A program made the position numbers and the translations under genes. Source: Oopsacas minuta (lineage: Eukaryota; Animalia; Porifera). From it: a DNA stretch of 64,000 bases. This document shows, in pieces, positions 1 through 64,000 of the stretch. Each line of letters opens with the position of its first letter. The stretch's first letter is position 1. Location of the stretch: assembly GCA_024704765.1 (NCBI GenBank), contig JAKMXF010000354.1, positions 853,690 through 917,689 of the forward strand, written 5' to 3'. The notes under the pieces are model-generated. The model was not told where the DNA came from, searched no databases, and saw only the letters and a list, made by a program, of their open reading frames with translations.

Positions 1-164
1 TTTATAGGATTTCTATTACTGGGATAGCAATTGTGAATTACAATTTGTTAACGATAATACAGTGTATGCCGGTTATAAGAACCCTTTTTTGGGAGTAGCA
101 ATACAGTCCGGATTACTTGCATAAATATGCAGGAATTTATGAGAACCGTCTTACAATCTTTTAG

Positions 165-3100
165 CCAGGGACACCTCCTCCAGTAAGTAAATCTACAGAT
201 GAGAGCCTGCATTGCAATCAATTACAAATACATCCTCGTGCTGATTTGAACCTCTCTCATAGCTTTGACTCTCTGGATAGTGAAGAGCATCATTCTGTAG
301 ACACACTTGGCCGCAAATCTGATTCTACCAGTAATATCCCTAAGAAAATATCTAGTGGCTCTAATGAGTGAGTTCATTTATTTCAGTCATTACACCATCG
401 CATTCTTATTTCTTAGTTCATATATTGTCGGTGGAATATATTTCTGTGTAGAGGTATTTGGGTGTAACGACCTATTGAATTCTAACCAATAATTACTGAC
501 TAATTTCCTAAATATGATTATCTCATAAATAACCTCGGTGTACGTGGTGGTGACGGGTTATCCCTCCAAAAGTACTGAGAAATTTTGCTGTTTAATACTT
601 ATGCTAAAACAAGGCACATAAAGCTTAAGGATGCGTCCGCCCGTTGCGCAGTGACCTAGCAAGAAGCGCGCTAGTACTAAATATATCTGAATAACTGTAG
701 TATAATTGGAAATGGAAAAATTGATCTCTTAATTGTAAGCTGATTTTATTATTAATTCTGTTTGAATTCTTTAATATTCAAACAGTTTAATAATTCCCCC
801 TCATTCACTCAAACATCATAATCCTTTGTATGGCAGTGATATGCATTGGAGTCATGAATCTGCTTAACTCATAGAGTACAGATAATACCCCCAACTTATT
901 GACAATAGTTATGCAATTAAGTTATAGAATGAGGTAATTGTTGATCAGTTGAAGGACTTTTTCCTGCTTGAAAATGCTATTTTCATAATGATCTTTATGT
1001 TATGCAAACATCATGCTGTTTATCACCTTTTATGACTCTTCAATGGGAAATCTTATAAATAGTACACAGACTTGAATAAATATTTAATATTTTTTATCGT
1101 CACTAATCTTATATACAATGTTATCATGTGTTTCATTCAGAATGTCCAGGAGGAGGTAACAATACATTCAAATTTATTCTATAATTATTTTATTTTTACT
1201 TAACCTTTTTACTTAACCTTTTTCCAAAGGGTGAAGTCAGGAAAAATGAAAAGAGCCTTGCTCAAAGCCTTGGGGGTTGGGAAGAAAGAGAGAAATTCAG
1301 AATTAGACATATCCACTAGTCTTTCAAGCAGTATCAGCAGTCCAGCTTTATCAAATGAGATTCCTAATCTTAGCTCAACACAGTCTGTACCAGCTAGAGT
1401 ATCCCGCGCTCTTAACATGAAAAGCTCAGTGGATGATTCGTGTGTATTTGAGAATGTTAGCGACACAGAGGCTGATCCGGACCCAGGATTGCTTCCTAAG
1501 AGCAGCTATGATCCCTCTCTTCAGGTCTCCACTGAGCTCACATCTTCTCCTGTCAGACATAGGTCTCCCAAATCTCCGAAAAAGAGATCCTTCAACAGCA
1601 ATTTCCCCGTTCCACCCCATTTCCAAAACACAGACTTTCAGTATGTATTTGAGAATGAAGATTCAGACACAGACTCTCTCTCTGACGTAGAAGCTTTCGA
1701 TGATTTTGATGAAATCTTAAACGATTCTGATAACGAAATGACAGAGGAGGATGTGGATAAGGCAAAGATGCGGACAATAGCCCGAGCAGCCTCTGGGATA
1801 ACATACAGTAAGTGCTATTACGTTGCTAAGGAGATCCTCTCCACTGAGGAGACTTATGTCAGGAAGCTAAGGTTGTTGCATATCGATTTCTCTGAGGCTC
1901 TTGAAGAGGCCAGCAAGAGAAATGGGAAGGTAAGTCATATCCCATTAATAGAATGACATAGCTTATACACACTGCATCATCTCTCTATATTATTCTAGCC
2001 AATCTTAACAGAAGATGTCCTTAAAAAGATATTCTCAAATCTTCCTGTGCTCTACCAGATTAATTCAACCTTCAGAGACGAGTTGAAGGAGCGATTGGAA
2101 ATCTGGAGTAAGTCCTCTAATAACCAGAATATTGGAGATATTATGAAGAGACACGCACACTTTTTTAAGGCTTATTCTCCATTCATTGCTAACTTTGATA
2201 GTTCACTTAAAATCCTAGAAGAGTTGACAAAGAAGAATAGTAGTTTCGGTCAATTCTTGTCTCTCTTCCAGTCTCTTCCGAAATGCAGTAGTCTGCCAGT
2301 ATCAGCTCATTTGCTAGGCATTGTACAGCGAATACCGAGATACAAATTGCTGTTAGAGCAGTATATCAAACATTTGCCTGAGGATTCGACAGACGGAGAA
2401 GATTCTGAGAAAGCTCTCGCACTCATAACAGAGGTAATCTACAGTACATCATGATGACTTTAATATTACAGTAGTTTATGTGCTATTCTAAATAGGTTGC
2501 TGTTCATGTAAATGAGAATTTACGACAGATGGATAATTTCAAAAAGATGGTAGATGTTTTGAATAAGATTGATGGAGATGTGGCTAACTTGTTTGTAGAA
2601 CCTCGTCAGTTCGTCAAAGGAGGTGAGCTGAAGAAAGTATGTAGGAAGGGTCAACAAATGCGAGCATTCTTCCTCTTCACAGATGTCTTGCTTCATACCA
2701 GTCTACCTGGCCCAGGGTCATGTGAGTATAAATACAGTAATTCTATTATTCATAGATTCAATAAACAAATCGTTTGCAGATAATTATAATACATTACGTA
2801 GTTACTTATCCTATAAATCATTGCTGTATGTAATTCCTGCACGGGTAGTTCCTTTCGTTTCCTCTTCTCGGCTTCCAGACGTTTGTATTTAGGCCAAAAT
2901 AGGAATAAATAAGCGATCAATGTAACTACAAATAAGACGTAATTAAAATAGAATAGATAAATATAATCCAAACCCTGTGAATTTGTAGAATCACTTGTAG
3001 TAGAGTTAGTTACGTCATACTGACTAATGTCACGATATTTTGAGTCAGGAGTATGTGCATAGGACCCCATTACAAGTTCCCTCAGCTACTGGGTAGGTGA

Positions 3101-4970
3101 TTTCTATAGCGAGCTCACTGAACACTGGTATTAGGGTTAATGCAAAGAACCCGAATAATATGAAAGAAACTGCTATTATAACATGTTGGTTGGGAATTCT
3201 AAAACTTCCATTACAAGAATAGAAGATAGAGTTGTTATACACATGCATAGCTTAGAAATTTCTTCAAATCGTTTTGTTCTATCAACTATGAATCCTATAA
3301 TGAGAGAACCAATCAATCCTGCGAATATCATAGCGGCTGCCTGCGTCCTATACACGGGTACAGCTGATACTAAATGCTGCTCTCATGACTCTCCCCGTTT
3401 AAACTGTCCATTCCCCCCCGCCATACTGATTTCATTATTTTATACATACAAGTACGAGAAATTTGATATTTAAGATTATAAGATATCACTCTCTATATCC
3501 CTTACATCATGTTTACTACCTGATGTATTATTCTAGCTAATTACAGCCTACACACACGTATACCTCTTGCTGGAATGAAGGTTGCTGAACATGAACAAGC
3601 TGACGATCTGAGTGAAAACGATCCTCTCAAACATTCATTCAAGATAATCAGTGCTATCCGATCATTCGTAGTAGTACCGTCTAGTCAAGAGGAGAAGGAA
3701 GAATGGTTGTCCGTCCTCAATAAGACTCTATCTGAGTTACAGGATAAAATGATATCGCATGCAAAGACTAACAACAGGACAAGTATATTCGTAGAACCAT
3801 CCTTGCTTGATAATAGTGATGCAGCATTAGGTAAGTACAATCATTACAATACACATACCAATGTTATATTAATGTATCTAGGGTCTCTTGCTCCTGTGTG
3901 GATACAGGATGACAGTGTAAGCATGTGTATGATGTGTTACAACAAATTTACATTCGCGAGGAGACGACATCATTGCCGTGTGTGCGGAAAAGTCCTGTGC
4001 GGTCCTTGTTCTTCCTTTAAAGCAGGTATAAAGTATCTTGGTAACAAACAGGCCCGCTGCTGTCTTAGCTGTTATGAGAAACTTACCAATGTTGAGGACG
4101 TTACCGAGGAAATAGATCCGGTCGCTAGTGTATCTGAAAATCCAGATACAAGTAGCAAAAAGAAACGGTAAGTACTATTAAGCCTTACAGCTATGCTACA
4201 TGTTACCATTTATATGTTTAGTACTCGTCTCCGCAAGGAACGGAGTTTGGTGCCTTCACATCTGTTACAAGCAACATCCTCAGAGGTAGACTATCAAATG
4301 CGAGGTAACCTGGAGTATAACGAGAGTAGTTCTACCAGGTTTAAAAACTCACGGTGGGTAGTTCTACAAGATTCAGTTTTGTTCATATTCAAGAAGAGAG
4401 AGGATACTGCAGCTATACAGACAGTACCTATTCTGGGATACTCTGTATGTATAATCATATACTTAACTTCCCAGTAATTCATTATTTATGAATTATCTCT
4501 TTTAGATTGATACTATTTCAGATACAGTGTTTGCTCTCAGTCACAGAAATGTACAGAATCGCTTTTTCAAGGCTGATTGCAAAGAGACAGCTGATAAATG
4601 GAAGAAAGAACTTTCTAGAATATTGGATGTTACTTTACCAGATTCTGCGGTTGAAATTGATCCTTATTCTACTATTCAAATTGTAGATACTAAATCTTTC
4701 TCGTTACGTACACGTAGTGCAACTACAGGTCACGTTTCATCTACACTGTGTGAGAGTGAAGCTAGTCGTAGTCAACAAACACAATCAAGTGATTACTCTA
4801 CTAAATCTTTATCAACTGGGGGCGTTACTTGTATCGATACCACCAAATATACAGACCCCCTGAGCCCGACCGATTCTGTTATTGAGGATGACGTGTCGAC
4901 AGAGAAAAATGACAAAGAAGATCTCACTGAGACAATCACAGAGGACAAGGTGATCGAAAATAATGATTAA
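165..4970 (+). CDS. FGD-family FYVE/RhoGEF/PH protein (Cdc42 GEF), 5'-truncated by the window edge
   Basis: Phase-consistent exons approx. 165-367, 1141-1155 (microexon), 1230-1929, 1999-2433, 2496-2736, 3537-3830, 3882-4167, 4222-4444, 4506-4970. DH domain (KEILSTEETYV...QRIPRYKLLL), PH, FYVE (WIQDD...RRRHHCRVCGKVLCGPCS) and a second PH domain, which is the FGD1-6 architecture. The vertebrate paralog cannot be assigned. The exons before 1230 are less certain. Confidence 0.88.
2750..3357 (-). pseudogene. Inverted partial copy of the SLC49A3-type transporter gene inside an FGD intron
   Basis: Reverse complement of 3061-3357 is nearly identical to 6432-6710, and 2863-3060 is a more diverged match to about 6764-6960. 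A 53-nt deletion between two TGGACA repeats (6711 and 6764 in the intact gene) shifts the frame. The 5' part of the gene is absent. Confidence 0.88.
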
Positions 4971-57222: not shown

Positions 57223-60200
57223 ATGACAGACAATATACACATAATTACAGTAAATGGTTGCAAGACTGGATTAGGGATCAGAATAGTGGGTCCATCTATT
57301 CCAGACAGTCCTTATGGTGTGTTTATTAAGAGTGTTACAGAGGGGTCACTGGCTGATACAGACGGACAGCTGAGAACTGGAGACAAGCTCGTGAGGGTGG
57401 GAGAAATAGAACTGACTGGGAAGACTCAGAGACAGGCAATCGACGTGTTGAAGCTTGAGGCACAGACTGATAGTATGACATTTACAATTGACAGATCTGA
57501 ACAAGTGAGAATAATTAATTAAACTATTCAATACAGTGTAACCTTCACAAACGGAGTGTCAGAGACGCCAAAAACCCCCGGTTGAGGAGGGTCATTTGTA
57601 TTAAGCATATTATTATTTAATATAGGCAGCTGAGGAGTTCGATATACTAATGACGCAGTCAGCTAATGAGATGACTTCTACATCTACCTCTAGCATTGTC
57701 GGGGGTGCTGTTAGTCTGACAGGTGGAGAGGATACAGAAGAGAGATGGGACCCAGAGACGCTGACAGAGGAGTCTCTATCTGTGAGTGAGCAAGCTCCCT
57801 CTAGTGCTATTCAAACTATTACTATTGAGAAGACTACACATTTGGGGATTGTTGTTCAAGGTAAGTTACTGACTTCTTAATTAATGATTAGAATCCATGG
57901 TTCAAGATACAGTATTATATTTTTGTAATAACCTTGAAGGTTCATATCCTACCATTCTTATTATTCGTATTTAGCCTGTTTTATAGTAACTTTATCATCA
58001 AACTGAAGAATTATCAAATGGATACTCAACATTACGAGTACTTACAATCTTCCACTACCCTGGGGGTGCTCGAGAAAACTGAACCCCTCCTCATTACCGG
58101 ACAAGCTGGCCAGATAGGTAGCATCCTCCTGGATGTGAGAGCTCTCTCTAAATGGATTGATACTCACAATCCCTCTGAGTTAATACAAGCAATCAGCCTT
58201 CTACTCGCTAGACTAAGGAATATACACACAGAAATACACACTTCATCTCAACACGAGGAAGAGACAGTATCTATTCTCTTATCTGATACTATTACTCAAT
58301 TAGTTACAAACTACAGATTAGAGTATACAGCTTCATCTGTTATCTGTAGCTTGATGGAACAGCTGATTAATAAGAAATTATTTATACCAGCTGGACTAAT
58401 TAAATTACTGGAGCAGATAGTAACTACTACTAATAGTTACAATGCTATAGGAATATTCAGATTGCTAGAACATGTTTTGATAATCTGGGACAGTAATAAT
58501 GGTGATGTAAGCTTGTTGACTTCTCTCTTGTCTCGTGTATGGATAGCTGGTTTTGAGGAATTGCATTCTCCTAACCCTAAGAAGAGACAGTCAGCTCTCA
58601 GCTTGCTCTGGCGGGTCTCCCTCACCTCAAACAGCCCCCAGACAGAGATACAATCTATTCTGACAGAATTCTCACAGGATTCAGATAGTAGAGTCAGAAC
58701 TACAGCACTATTGGGATTCCTAGGCTTACTGGATAGCTCTACTGCATTTGATCAGTCTAGATTGCTAGCAATATATAAATGTACTTTACCTCTATTAGCA
58801 GATGAGTTCGAGGAGGTGAGAATCCCCGCGGGGAAACTTATCCATAACATAGCTCTCATATGTCCGGACGCTGTCTGGGGGACACGTACCAGGGAACAGA
58901 AGGTTCTGACGCTCCTAGATGATGCATTCATGTGGTTATGTAATGCTATTAATGACCTACGTGAATCTGTCAAGTTGTCAGCTCTACAATGTCTGTCCTC
59001 CTTCTCAGCTGTTAGTGAAGATATTCTGCTACACAGTCTGGATAAGACATTCTCTAATACTATGCAGATGGTAGCTGACACACTCAACATGAGAGGATTC
59101 GTGTCAGCATTCGTACAAGCTTTAGATGATGAGTGTGCAGAAGTACGCTTATGCGCTCTACAGACTGTGAGTCAAATAGCTAGAGAGAATTCTACTTTTG
59201 CAACTTCTGCTCTAGACTTGATTGTTGATATGTTCAGTGATGAAATACAGTCAGTACGTCTTGAAGCTATTCGTTGTCTGGGCTCATTCTCCACTAACGT
59301 ATCTCTCAGAGACGAGCAGCTTGACGTAGTCCTGTACAATCTAGAAGAGAATTCCCAATTTATCCGTGAGGCTATTCATAGACTACTCGGGTCATGTTCC
59401 CTACCTACTGGCTCTGCTATTCTCTGTGTAGTTAACTCTCTGCTAGCTAATCTCACTAAATACCCTCTAGATGTATACTCCATATGGAGATGTGTTAAGG
59501 GTATAGGGTCTAATAACGGACATGCTGTATGCTCCCAGGTATCCGGTCTCTTGAGAGCTCATCCATTCTTCATATCGACAGAACCTAATCCAGAAGATCC
59601 GGCCTATGTGAGTATTCTTATTCTTGTATTTAACGCTATCTCATCCTGTCCCACAGTACTTCCCATCCTCCCTACTCATATATACGTACGGTACCCCTAC
59701 CTCAGAGACGCTCTCCCTCAACTAGCTCCACAGATACGATTAGCTGTGTATAATACGTCTTCAGCTAGCAGAGAGCAGGTAGACTTGTCTCTGTCATTTG
59801 TTAAACAATTCAGTTATGTTCTAGAGAATATAGAACATGCTAATCCTGTCCTGTTAAAGACACATGCTAATGACTTCTTCTCTCTGACACAGACAGTATC
59901 CCCCGTCGCTGCCTTTGCTTCTTTCTATCTCTACTCACTCAGTCTCATTACTGACAGCATACAAATATTATCCGCAGATGTTTCTAATACAAATATTATG
60001 CTCACAAAAGCTCTGCTAGCTCTGAAGTACATATACAGACTGATATATCTTTTCACTGGCCTCAGCGAGAAAGAGAAAGATATCTTCACTGAGTGGAGAG
60101 AAGCAGCTTGGAGTCTAGTCAATAGAACTCAACAGCTGGGCTCAGAAAAGAGAGTTTGCTTAGAAATGATTTCATCTGAAGTTCCCAGAATAGAATCACC

Positions 60201-63200
60201 TCCTTCTAACTTGATACGTATATCCACCGTTAAAATATTTGAACCTAAACCTAACGAGTCAGAAACTCCTCTCAAATATGCATCAGGGCTAGCATTCTCC
60301 CTAGTAGTGAATGCTGTAATAACCAACTGTACAGATATTAGCTGTATAGCTGTCACTGTTAGGATGCCAGATGACAAGCTAGTCATCCACCAGCCAAAAC
60401 CAGATGAATTCAGTCACCTGGGAGATCAGGATTACCGCTTGCTTACTAGTATCGTGTTAGACGGTAAGAAATGGTCTAGTCAGGGACAGATAGAGCTTAA
60501 TGTAGTACATAAATACGAAGAGAACGAGGGAGGAAGTGAATACAATCTAGTTGAAATGGAATCTGAGATTGTAAATGTATCTCCAATGGATAATTTTGTG
60601 AAGAGAGATTCTCTAAAACATTGCTGTATTTGTCTCTCACAGTCTGTGTGTTTGTTCATCAAATCTAAATAAGATATTAAACTTTGTATTATTAAATCAT
60701 AATTTCTTATTTGTTCAATTATACTTTAACCTCCCCAGGTGCTACTTGTTATTTCATGTTTAGACTTTTAATTTTGTAATTGGATTATTTATAATTTATT
60801 GTGTGTTGTAGGAGGAGAGGGTGACCCAGAGGGACCCAGGGTATCAATCAGAGACATCACAGAGGGAGGAGATGCTCAAATAGACGGGAGACTGAAGATA
60901 GGAGATACAATTCTATCCATCAACAATGTTTCATTTCAATCTATAGAACTAATTAAGGTTATGCAGTTGCTTACAAGAATGAAGATTAGTCGAAGAACAA
61001 AAGAGTACACAATTGTCTTTCAGAGAATAGGGTAAGACAATTTGCTTATTACTTTAATTGACAATAGAGAAGGGGACAGGTACCGAAAGGAAATATATAT
61101 TTACTCACTACTATGCTAGGTTTATTTCCTTGAATTTGGTATACTACAGTCTAAACATAGTTTATCAGTTGTTTACTTTTTTACTTGTAATTCGAGAATA
61201 TTGGTTATCATATCTGCCCTCGATATTATAAGTAGATTATTGTCTACAAATTAGAAAATGAAGGTATTTTTAAACTGGTCATCCATCAAACCAGTGGAAA
61301 ACTCTGCAATATCAATTTTTCCATCCTCACTTTTATCGAACATCTGGAACACAGCCTCTACCTCTTCTTCACTGGCTGTTTCTCCCATCAATTCAATAAA
61401 ATTCGTAAAATCATCTTTGCTAATCAACCCATCTTTATCTCTGTCAATAATCTCAAACATATCACTAACAGTTTGTGTATTTGTTTGTTGTTTCGCACCT
61501 TCTGTTACCATTTTAATAAAATCTTGGATGTCTATTTTATTGTCGAAGTTTACGTCGAACTTTTTCACAAGTTTATCAATCTCACTCAGGGGTACTTGTT
61601 CATGTGTCTGTGAGATTAGCAGTTCTATCTCCTTACTTCCTATTAACCCATCTTTATCCTTGTCAAGTTTGGAGAATATAGGATTGAGTGTCGACAGTAC
61701 CTTATTATGATTCTGTAGATGTTGCCATCCTATTAATAATCATATATTCATAAATATTTACAGAAGTAATCCTCCCTCGCATGTGAGCCGAGAGGGTGAG
61801 AAAGTTCAAGAATGCATTTCAGAAGTAGCCAAGAAACCATCAGACACGGAAGTGCAGTCAGAAGGTAAATATGTACTTTAATTCAACTTACCTGATTTCT
61901 TTGAATTTATCTTATCCATTAATAACTTGCCCTAGGATATTTTATTTTATTTATTTGTTTATTATTTATACTAATTTCTTGTTATTATTCATCCAATTTG
62001 TGAAGTTTTACACTCTATTAATAGAATTGTTTAGTTCTTACAGCTGTAAATTACCCATTATTGTAATTGTATATATTTCCTGGGTTATGTCTGAGAGTCT
62101 GGTCATATTCACAGCTGTTTATTTGATAGGTACAGATACAAAACGGAGCTCCGAACTCCGCAGTAGTGACTCTAAACAGAAACACGGCAGAGGAAGGAGG
62201 AAAGGAATGCAGCGTAAGATGTCCCTCGATCCTCACTGTAAAGTAAAGCTCTCTAAACTAGAGAAAGCACTTTGTTACTTAGGTCAGTTATGCCATGTCA
62301 GCATAATAGCATGTATGCAGTCATATATCTAATTATTTCCTAAAACTCAATAATCCAGTAAACACAAATATTTACTGTTAATGTCTGTCTATTGGGTGTA
62401 TAAGGATATTATCTTTTTCTATTGCAATGGAGTTTGCTTGCAAATCTCCACAATCGGATCGATCACCTACTTTTATTGTTATGTCTTAATTACTTTGACC
62501 AGCAATCAAATTATTGTTTATTAGCTTGTGAACTAATTGTACCCTCTTCTCTGCGCTAACCTAATTAGCGTGCTAACATTAATTTTTTATTGTTCTATTC
62601 AGGTTATACACCGAGTGAAGAACAAAGAGCTCAGTTACATGAGAATTTAAATATTGATGAAGATGGATACGTGACTTATCTAGATTTTGTGAACGAGGCT
62701 AAGAGGCTCTTCGCTATTCAAATTGATGAGAGACAGCTCAGTTCAGGTATTTTATCAAATTAGAAAATTATAGTAAACTCTAATAAGGAATAGATTAGCT
62801 AAATAAATATATTAATATTACTCTCATAGAAAAGTATTTTTGCCCGTATATTTAATCATCTTGATCAATGGCCTGTTTCTTCTCAATCATCTCTTCTAAC
62901 TTTCTCTGTAAAACTCGAGCAAATGTTGCTGTATATAGCGGACTTACCGAGTCGAGGAGCGAATATATAGTTTCATAAAATCTGTTTGTATTTTCTCCTT
63001 TCTCCATGAAATCGAATTCATTTGACACAATTCTGAAACCCTTGACAGATAGCTCCACGCAATATTTGACCTTTTCCTGAGTTTCTATGTTAAAATATAC
63101 CAGGTCACTGGTAGAGGCGAGCTTTGTAGAAACTTCAACTGACTTGACAGCAAACTCAATTTCTCTCTTTATTTCTGGAGCTTGTAAATTAAGGTTTATG

Positions 63201-63621
63201 TCTGTATCTGTTTCGCTCCCATACTCCCAATTGGTAGCTCTTGCCATATCTCTTTAAAATATAAATTGCTACTAAGTAGTAATACTGGGATATTTATTTT
63301 AAATAATTATGTCTGACATTACAATCAATTTCTGTTTATATCGAAGCTCAAGGGACAGTGAAAATTACTTCGCTATAACCCATGAAAATTATCTTACTTT
63401 GGCGGTTTGGGTCCATATTTGTACAATTACAGACTTCAATATAACTGAAGTTGAGTGTACATGATACAATGTATAATATTTAAATTTTCTTAGGATTATT
63501 CTTACTGGGCTCTACGCCAAGAGATGAGACAGACCAAATACAGAAAGAATTAGAGTTAGACCCAGATGCGTTTCGCAGTACAGCTGATGAAGATAGAAGT
63601 GTATTAGAACTGCTAGACGAG
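57223..63621 (+). CDS. STXBP4: STXBP4/Synip-like PDZ-PDZ-EF-hand protein; continues beyond the window; host of nested genes
   Basis: Phase-consistent exons 57223-57504, 57626-57860, 60812-61031, 61764-61864, 62130-62282, 62603-62746, 63494-63621. PDZ1 (GLGIRIVG...DGQLRTGD), PDZ2 split across 57860/60812, and KMSLDPHCKVKLSKLEKALCYLG|YTPSEEQRAQL...GYVTYLDFVNEAKRLF, which resembles the STXBP4 EF-hand-like region. Confidence 0.8.
57534..57598. mobile_element. MITE family B, internally deleted copy in STXBP4 intron 1
   Basis: CAGTGTAACCTTCACAAACGGAGTGTCAGAGACGCCAAAAA matches 25381-25420. TA on both flanks and a degenerate right TIR. Confidence 0.7.
58018..60672 (+). CDS. INTS4: Integrator complex subunit 4, intronless, nested on the same strand in STXBP4 intron 2
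   Basis: HEAT repeats with INTS4-type motifs DSDSRVRTTAL, DDAF..LC, LHSLDK, AFVQALDDE..EVR, VDMFSDEIQSVRL, NLTKYP.D..SIW and EP..EDPAY..ILILVFNA. First ATG at 58018 (884 aa). Confidence 0.9.
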   Translation: MDTQHYEYLQSSTTLGVLEKTEPLLITGQAGQIGSILLDVRALSKWIDTHNPSELIQAISLLLARLRNIHTEIHTSSQHEEETVSILLSDTITQLVTNYRLEYTASSVICSLMEQLINKKLFIPAGLIKLLEQIVTTTNSYNAIGIFRLLEHVLIIWDSNNGDVSLLTSLLSRVWIAGFEELHSPNPKKRQSALSLLWRVSLTSNSPQTEIQSILTEFSQDSDSRVRTTALLGFLGLLDSSTAFDQSRLLAIYKCTLPLLADEFEEVRIPAGKLIHNIALICPDAVWGTRTREQKVLTLLDDAFMWLCNAINDLRESVKLSALQCLSSFSAVSEDILLHSLDKTFSNTMQMVADTLNMRGFVSAFVQALDDECAEVRLCALQTVSQIARENSTFATSALDLIVDMFSDEIQSVRLEAIRCLGSFSTNVSLRDEQLDVVLYNLEENSQFIREAIHRLLGSCSLPTGSAILCVVNSLLANLTKYPLDVYSIWRCVKGIGSNNGHAVCSQVSGLLRAHPFFISTEPNPEDPAYVSILILVFNAISSCPTVLPILPTHIYVRYPYLRDALPQLAPQIRLAVYNTSSASREQVDLSLSFVKQFSYVLENIEHANPVLLKTHANDFFSLTQTVSPVAAFASFYLYSLSLITDSIQILSADVSNTNIMLTKALLALKYIYRLIYLFTGLSEKEKDIFTEWREAAWSLVNRTQQLGSEKRVCLEMISSEVPRIESPPSNLIRISTVKIFEPKPNESETPLKYASGLAFSLVVNAVITNCTDISCIAVTVRMPDDKLVIHQPKPDEFSHLGDQDYRLLTSIVLDGKKWSSQGQIELNVVHKYEENEGGSEYNLVEMESEIVNVSPMDNFVKRDSLKHCCICLSQSVCLFIKSK
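61251..61919 (-). CDS. Calmodulin-like four-EF-hand protein, interleaved with STXBP4
   Basis: Exon 1 61919-61892 (MDKINSKKS, phase-1 donor GTAAGT) and exon 2 61729-61251. EF loops DKDKDGLIGSKE, DVNFDNKIDIQD, DRDKDGLISKDD and DKSEDGKIDIAE. Confidence 0.8.
62852..63247 (-). CDS. GSKIP: GSK3B-interacting protein (DUF727), nested antisense in an STXBP4 intron
   Basis: EFAVKSVEVS.KL...VYFNIETQE..KYCVELSVKGFRIV...YETIYSLLDSVSP.Y...F...LQRKLE matches the GSKIP pattern. Confidence 0.88.
   Translation of the reverse strand: MARATNWEYGSETDTDINLNLQAPEIKREIEFAVKSVEVSTKLASTSDLVYFNIETQEKVKYCVELSVKGFRIVSNEFDFMEKGENTNRFYETIYSLLDSVSPLYTATFARVLQRKLEEMIEKKQAIDQDD
63322..63457 (-). mobile_element. MITE family A copy, reverse orientation
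   Basis: TA-flanked, TIRs CAATCAATTTCTGTTTATATCGAAG / CTTCAATATAACTGAAGTTGAGTG. The reverse complement aligns with 56950-57079. Confidence 0.8.
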
Positions 63622-63711
63622 GTATAATATGTATAACACTTAAGAATAGACTATTTGTAATAATTCAGCCACAATTAAGCAAACAAATCATATAGTTATA
63701 GCTGGTAGAAG

Positions 63712-63951
63712 TTACTTGACCTCCTTTTCCTTCTCCTCGATTTGTTCCATCAGTCCTTGGACGTTCTGCTCCAGCTGTTCCACACGATCACTCATCTCGT
63801 CCAGTTTAGAAGTTATCTGAGTTGATATCTCCTCAAACTTGCCTTGCATGTCTTGGAGTAAGCGTCCTATTACCAAGGATAGATCTTGTGCCCGTGCGGA
63901 TTCTGCACCCTGTTGTCCAGGATTGTTCTCCTCTTGCTTAGAAGGGTTCAT
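63712..63951 (-). CDS. HSBP1: Heat shock factor-binding protein 1, antisense, downstream of an STXBP4 donor site
   Basis: 79-aa coiled coil AQDLSLVIGRLLQDMQGKFEEISTQITSKLDEMSDRVEQLEQNVQGLM, matching HSBP1. Confidence 0.88.
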   Translation of the reverse strand: MNPSKQEENNPGQQGAESARAQDLSLVIGRLLQDMQGKFEEISTQITSKLDEMSDRVEQLEQNVQGLMEQIEEKEKEVK

Positions 63952-64000
63952 ATCTCTGTGATTTGGATATAATATTAATTGCTAAATTTGAATGAAAATG

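Follow-up and report, generated by a model that had tools for sequence, protein, structure and literature searches.

Complete genes predicted within the introns of a probable STXBP4 gene in the glass sponge Oopsacas minuta

Introduction

Nested genes have long been known in animals. They make up about 5-12% of the genes of many animals and stand out in glass sponges as particularly common and conserved (PMC10282587). Aphrocallistes vastus has 2,432 of them (12.4%), "many of which are conserved", and 83 were counted in Oopsacas minuta, a low figure that was attributed to annotation settings (PMC10282587). Nesting goes unmentioned in the O. minuta genome paper. Mammalian nested genes have no strong bias in orientation and can influence which alternative polyadenylation (poly(A)) sites their hosts use; a mammalian host at the 95th percentile carries 3-4 of them, with extremes far higher (PMC11694760). 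Here we analyse a locus of O. minuta at which a host gene, probably STXBP4, would carry complete genes in its introns. The locus begins in a window of 64,000 nucleotides (nt) of contig JAKMXF010000354.1 (positions 853,690 to 917,689, assembly GCA_024704765.1) and continues into the DNA downstream of it. STXBP4, also called Synip, consists of a PDZ domain, a coiled-coil and a WW domain (PMC3411842).

An earlier interpretation of the window, made from the letters alone (hereafter the sequence-only reading), had placed four conserved genes in successive introns of STXBP4 and seen in them an extreme compaction of the genome. We consider it likely that the exons and domains described below form one 10-exon O. 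minuta gene of about 20.4 kb, with the STXBP4/Synip layout (PDZ1)-PDZ2-linker-helical-WW and with complete genes in its introns. The locus would resemble the nesting known from glass sponges and other animals: complete genes, of either strand, sit within introns of a larger one, the gene-bearing introns are large, and the arrangement is apparently conserved among hexactinellids. It differs in the high number of nested genes, seven protein genes and one transfer RNA (tRNA) in 20.4 kb. This locus was not found described in the literature that was searched.

Results

Exon boundaries between positions 56500 and 64000 were checked by direct reading and with a script. L009 and L010 are DNA segments downstream of the window, and their coordinates are local to each segment. 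The joined coding sequence of the host was assessed exon by exon for boundaries, phase, domains and coding score. For the last, a codon model was trained on 20 long open reading frames (ORFs) of the region, which is AT-rich (35-42% GC), and scores in bits per codon were compared over six frames. PDZ domains were also searched with a local profile built from 90 domains of multi-PDZ proteins. The host gene model comprises the following features (a slash marks the exon boundary).

57223-57504, plus strand: exon E1, start codon and complete PDZ domain (PDZ1; Pfam PDZ 1e-08; local PDZ profile 63 bits); donor CAA/GTGAGA
57626-57860, plus strand: exon E2, acidic and Ser-rich linker, ending in the predicted first strand and carboxylate-binding loop of PDZ2 (…TITIEKTTHLGIVVQG); donor AAG/GTAAGT
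57861-60811, plus strand: intron 2, 2,951 nt, 90% INTS4 coding sequence, leaving 157 nt upstream of the INTS4 ATG and 139 nt downstream of its stop codon
60812-61031, plus strand: exon E3, predicted remainder of PDZ2 (Pfam PDZ 4.5e-09, profile positions 22-72 of 81)
61764-61864, plus strand: exon E4, 101 nt (GT..AG sites, phase, coding score +0.21 bits per codon)
62130-62282, plus strand: exon E5, basic, Ser-rich linker without a Pfam family match (splice sites, phase, coding score +0.19)
62283-62602, plus strand: gene-free intron (GT..AG)
62603-62746, plus strand: exon E6, weakly EF-hand-like helix-loop-helix (Pfam EF-hand_7 E=0.038, below cut-off; coding score +0.23)
63494-63621, plus strand: exon E7, acidic linker (splice sites, phase, coding score +0.32)
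L009 5321-5544, plus strand: exon E8, the next in-frame exon, 4.7 kb beyond HSBP1 and outside the window
L010 4840-5142, plus strand: exon E9, ending in …LPKGWDEAFTEDGL
L010 5206-5329, plus strand: exon E10, starting with YYINYETQTTSWLHP and ending in the stop codon; a 63-nt intron separates it from E9

Of the 20,417 bases of the host, 1,914 are exonic, and the part in the window is its 5' third. All nine introns are of the GT..AG type (18 of 18 splice sites canonical), phase is unbroken throughout, and several donors are near consensus. In each of the ten exons the claimed frame is the best of six, at +0.11 to +0.32 bits per codon, comparable to the scores of GSKIP, the EF-hand gene and HSBP1 described below (0.21-0.37 bits per codon). 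E4 is required for the reading frame, since the frame is shifted and meets a stop once E3 is joined directly to E5; skipping of E4 was thus rejected. From these sequences we infer the joining of the host exons into one mRNA.

The first gene predicted in a host intron lies on the strand of the host.

58018-60672, plus strand: INTS4 (Integrator subunit 4), 884 amino acids (aa), intronless (HEAT repeats, HEAT 5e-15, and the Ig-like C-terminal domain, Pfam INTS4_C PF25458 4e-24, profile positions 2-124 of 129)

At the level of gene models INTS4 is nested, as it would lie wholly between a host donor and acceptor with the two halves of PDZ2 on either side. This apparent split of PDZ2 across the INTS4-bearing intron is the strongest single point for the nest. 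E3 by itself gives a PDZ fold with neither first strand nor carboxylate-binding loop. Its frame opens just five codons before the acceptor and its first methionine stands near its end, so E3 cannot start a protein. Residues 5-69 of E3 (65 residues) align to chain positions 38-101 of the solved STXBP4 PDZ domain 1wi4 (E 5.5e-8). With the local profile, the tail of E2 aligns to positions 3-14, up to the last residue of the exon, and E3 resumes at position 24. Scored against the 90 N-terminal PDZ segments, the last 20 residues of E2 lie at z=5.6 relative to shuffled sequences, and none of 300 shuffles scored as high. On the N-terminal PDZ sub-profile, E2 ranks 22nd among 2,502 six-frame peptides from 91 kb; GLGF-like chance matches dominate that ranking, and the place of E2 in it is supportive and not decisive.

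A PDZ-INTS4 fusion was considered and rejected. The sole in-frame acceptor that could be reached from E2 runs into a stop, and the INTS4 orthologues are stand-alone ORFs with the same end residues. Past the INTS4 stop come two ATTAAA hexamers, at 4 and 19 nt, and the host acceptor lies about 100-130 nt beyond them. It follows from the sequence that the host polymerase would have to read through a poly(A) signal on its own strand.

The C-terminal part of the model lies in L010. Residues 1-15 of E10 correspond to positions 17-31 of the 31-position Pfam WW profile, and the stop follows 25 codons later. In the solved STXBP4 WW domain 2ysg, chain positions 4-21 are matched by the tail of E9 and 23-39 by E10. 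As the two exons align to complementary parts of 2ysg, the WW domain would be a second domain reconstituted across an intron. A C-terminal WW domain is thus present in the host. E8, folded alone, gives two long helices with a mean predicted local distance difference test score (pLDDT) of 81, and on this account the order PDZ, helical region, WW matches the published architecture (PMC3411842). A codon-usage scan from HSBP1 to the host stop returned HSBP1, E9 and E8, in this order, as the top unannotated open stretches; E8 and E9 are also the top such stretches on the plus strand across the 13 kb downstream. ESM Atlas matches with E9 scored 0.83 and 0.75, below the useful range.

Like STXBP4/Synip, the sponge host would therefore be ordered as a PDZ domain, a helical region and a C-terminal WW domain, with E3 aligning to the solved PDZ domain and E9/E10 to the two halves of the WW domain. 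The model differs from STXBP4/Synip in that it may carry an additional N-terminal PDZ domain, encoded by E1. The host is probably STXBP4.

Exon-level orthologues of E3 were found in three other assemblies (P0021, P0161 and P0162; 84-86 aa, 76-79% identity), with the same boundaries. P0021 has the same start as E3 (…/GGEG…) and the same end (…FQR.G), with a stop directly after. INTS4 orthologues have 882-890 aa and 71-79% identity, and GSKIP orthologues 68-80% identity. INTS4 and GSKIP orthologues occur on contigs of identical size in eight assemblies (117,077; 187,800; 612,589; 716,806; 909,647; 994,430; 1,916,916; and 1,942,194), and E3 and INTS4 orthologues do so in three cases (41,839; 187,800; and 716,806), one of which is a contig of 41.8 kb. 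Equal contig sizes, taken as linkage on the same contig, are consistent with a conserved nest and are no proof of one. Giant multi-PDZ proteins, in which each of many domains adds to the score, accounted for almost all of the best 150 matches when a representative library was searched with E3; the search gave one useful exon-level orthologue and no full-length STXBP4. A metagenome scan with an INTS4 alignment (Joint Genome Institute contigs) gave only relatives of about 26-31% identity from unidentified or unrelated eukaryotes, which are uninformative on synteny. Transcript-derived fragments were absent from the protein-search matches.

These comparisons bear on the idea that the supposed host exons are either stretches open by chance or remnants of a decayed gene, the region being a row of compact independent genes. 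Several exons are indeed short, of low complexity and without a family match, and single-exon coding scores are weak. However, E3 keeps its sequence and its identical boundaries in three other assemblies. In each of the ten exons the claimed frame has the top score, the halves of two domains complement each other across introns, and all eighteen splice sites are canonical. We regard chance or decay as very improbable.

The INTS4 nest also raises the question of functional coupling, by which host transcription would gate the antisense genes through interference, or INTS4 mRNA would be processed from the host pre-mRNA, for example by spliced-leader trans-splicing or an alternative 3' end, with a single promoter then serving both genes. 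Only 157 nt lie between the host donor and the INTS4 ATG, with acceptor-like TTTTATAG sites between them, and the two ATTAAA signals would have to be read through by the host polymerase. Linkage is retained in at least 8 assemblies, and leader sequences occur on a minority of Aphrocallistes long reads (PMC10282587). Conserved linkage is nevertheless expected anyway, because microsynteny is extensive among glass sponges (PMC10282587), and nested genes elsewhere generally have their own promoters. Coupling is in our view highly improbable. Much the same holds for a wider proposal, in which the block would be an anciently fixed gene-in-gene unit of Hexactinellida, its 20-kb host coupled to eight embedded genes either by cutting INTS4 mRNA from the host pre-mRNA or by host read-through that switches six antisense genes; we find it quite improbable.

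The remaining genes predicted within the host introns in the window are antisense to the host.

61251-61729, minus strand: exon 2 of an EF-hand gene, four EF-hands and the stop codon (Pfam EF-hand_7 4e-26, four EF-hand_1 stretches); acceptor TTATTAATAG/G at 61730
61892-61919, minus strand: exon 1 of the EF-hand gene, predicted only, ATG plus nine codons (28 nt); perfect donor CAG/GTAAGT, phase right
62852-63247, minus strand: GSKIP, 131 aa, intronless (Pfam GSKIP_dom PF05303 1e-30, profile positions 7-104 of 105), in host intron 6
63712-63951, minus strand: HSBP1, 79 aa (coiled-coil domain, Pfam PF06825 2e-17, profile positions 1-49 of 51), 90 nt after host E7, in intron 7

At the gene-model level the EF-hand gene, GSKIP and HSBP1 are nested, each being flanked by predicted host exons of consistent phase with GT..AG sites. 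The EF-hand gene needs an upstream exon because no in-frame ATG precedes its first EF-hand. Its frame closes just upstream of the acceptor, and the nearest upstream ATG stands at 61919. With the predicted exon 1, host exon E4 would sit inside a 162-nt intron of the EF-hand gene (61730-61891). In this the pair is like known interleaved antisense genes, E4 lying in the EF-hand intron and the EF-hand exons in host introns 3 and 4. It differs in that the 28-nt exon 1 is a prediction, and thus the interleaving is a model. Calmodulin has four EF-hands and about 149 aa. The gene had earlier been called calmodulin-like; Pfam shows four EF-hands in it, and "EF-hand protein" is the safe name rather than calmodulin.

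The GSKIP ATG is separated from host E7 by 246 nt. A word search with the GSKIP protein returned no protein of this genome's own set, which is consistent with under-annotation of nested genes in the published O. minuta set.

The nested genes, on the present models, are complete independent cistrons and not alternative host exons: they have full-length Pfam domains, INTS4 has stand-alone ORFs as orthologues, and no in-frame acceptor leads from E2 into INTS4.

Downstream of the window, host introns 7 and 8 would hold further genes.

L009 1911-4082, minus strand: class-C G-protein-coupled receptor (GPCR), 723 aa (7tm_3 4e-36), with an extracellular domain of the GPR158/179 type, in host intron 7
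L009 5613-5689, plus strand: tRNA-Val(CAC), 68 nt after E8, in intron 8 (ARAGORN and Rfam agree, 61 bits)
L009 5816-7672, minus strand: DEAD-box helicase with a C-terminal CCHC knuckle (DDX41-like), in intron 8
L009 7828-9105, minus strand: seven-bladed WD40 protein, in intron 8, with an N-terminus reminiscent of DAW1/WDR69

Intron 7 measures 5,009 nt and contains HSBP1 and the class-C GPCR. Intron 8 measures 8,295 nt and contains the tRNA, the helicase, the WD40 gene and 4.7 kb of unique DNA. Empty host introns range from 63 to 320 nt, whereas gene-bearing ones range from 732 to 8,295 nt. Arranged head to tail, the six antisense genes make up a single run; host exons E4-E8 are found in the spacers or intron of these genes. 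Exons and nested coding sequence together account for 54% of the host span, which takes in seven nested protein genes and one tRNA.

The unique DNA of intron 8 (L010 ~100-4800) shows neither coding signal nor Rfam match and is unusually empty for a compact genome. A dispersed element of 70 bp, at about 797-867, is the one repeat in it. This stretch could conceal small host exons or a non-coding gene. Rfam, applied to the window part together with L009 and L010, returned nothing but the tRNA.

A dispersed repeat lies in host intron 6, between the start of GSKIP and E7.

63317-63460, unstranded: copy of a dispersed repeat, about 125-140 bp

This repeat resembles a miniature inverted-repeat transposable element (MITE) or a short interspersed nuclear element (SINE) and has more than 40 copies across the assembly, at 79-86% identity. 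An inverted copy was seen by eye at about 56960-57090, between a TDP-43-like gene and the host start codon. That gene, a TDP-43 orthologue (55467-56708, plus strand; TDP-43_N 5e-22 and two RNA recognition motifs), lies on the strand of the host and stops 515 nt short of the host ATG.

Discussion

Our results suggest an arrangement in which other complete genes have settled in five of the nine introns of one host gene. INTS4, in intron 2, would share the strand of the host; introns 3 and 4 would hold the two exons of the antisense EF-hand gene, intron 6 GSKIP, intron 7 HSBP1 and the class-C GPCR, and intron 8 the tRNA-Val, the DDX41-like helicase and the WD40 gene. The host pre-mRNA would be transcribed across all of them, and they would be removed together with the introns. 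Each nested gene would use its own start and stop, and its own promoter may be presumed in the short spacers, such as the 157 nt before the INTS4 ATG or the 246 nt between the GSKIP ATG and E7.

The structural claim of the sequence-only reading, four nested genes in successive introns of one STXBP4-like host, holds at the level of gene models, and the nest reaches beyond what it described, to at least seven protein genes and a tRNA. Its exon and intron coordinates were all correct, with GT..AG sites and continuous phase, and its estimate that about 4 kb of the 6.8 kb is coding sequence of other genes agrees with our count for 57223-64000 (3,798 of 6,778 bases, or 56%, against 1,263 bases of host exons). 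The layout was otherwise incomplete, as the gene-free intron 62283-62602 had been omitted. It was also silent on strands: INTS4 lies on the strand of the host and the other three genes are antisense. The EF-hand gene had been located properly and treated as simply nested, and the present model has it interleaved with the host. As to the name of the host, the PDZ-helical-WW order and the alignment of E3 to 1wi4 speak for STXBP4, and the higher scores of DLG4, InaD-like and YAP1 chains speak against it; orthology is probable and not proven.

Several observations weigh against a single host gene of the STXBP4 type. First, regarding its identity, two domain-level PDB matches are what carries the putative orthology with STXBP4. 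DLG4 and InaD-like chains outscore 1wi4 with E3 (lower E-values), 1wi4 giving the longest single-domain alignment, and YAP1 WW chains score slightly above 2ysg. Second, the first half of PDZ2 is faint. Against the generic PDZ profile the E2 tail reaches -0.8 bits, which alone is not significant, and neither E2 nor its 25-residue tail has a meaningful match in PDB, the segment being too short. Third, E4, E5, E7 and E8 have no homology support, and single host exons lie only z=0.6-1.8 above a coding control that was deliberately harsh (random unmasked segments, each taken in its best frame of six, with unannotated exons still inside). Fourth, small host exons in the 4.7 kb of unique non-coding DNA could have been overlooked, and the linkage in other assemblies is read from equal contig sizes rather than from coordinates. 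Finally, the E7-E8 and E8-E9 joins, across introns of 5.0 and 8.3 kb, have only phase, splice consensus and domain order to speak for them, and the one link between E1 and E2 is a phase-compatible intron of 121 nt.

The last of these observations leads to a different division of the same exons, into two or more transcription units. E1 could be a separate small PDZ gene, the host then starting at the in-frame ATG of E2 at 57650; E1 is in fact not STXBP4-like in the PDB search. Alternatively, E2-E7 would form a PDZ gene and E8-E10 a helical-WW gene, and the apparent nests of HSBP1 and the GPCR and of the helicase and the WD40 gene would be ordinary neighbours between two genes. No domain is split across E7-E8 or E8-E9, and the two introns there are long compared with the mean intron of this genome (341 bp). 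However, the internal exons E3-E9 are without plausible start codons and open only at acceptors, introns divide both PDZ2 and the WW domain, and the order of the parts is that of the published Synip architecture. Moreover, INTS4, the EF-hand gene and GSKIP would be nested either way. We thus consider separate units unlikely, and one host gene with complete genes in its introns the better account of the locus.

The sequence-only reading had further proposed that such nesting reflects extreme compaction and that it needs some means of keeping polymerases from colliding and transcripts from being polyadenylated too early. Our analysis gave no support for this proposal. The gene-bearing introns are simply enlarged, and nothing at the locus requires a special system against collisions. 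The mutual tolerance of host and nested transcription would most likely need nothing beyond the mechanisms that serve the nested genes of other animals.

In summary, this locus is distinctive in detail, with its same-strand, domain-splitting nest, its interleaved pair, its tRNA and its seven nested protein genes, and ordinary in kind; no new type of genome organisation is revealed. The INTS4 nest, which splits a domain, shares the strand of its host and has ATTAAA signals embedded in the intron, would be a convenient natural test case for read-through of poly(A) sites. The locus is also a clean and informative case for annotators of compact animal genomes, and loci such as this suggest that the count of 83 nested genes in O. 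minuta reflects gene-calling settings.

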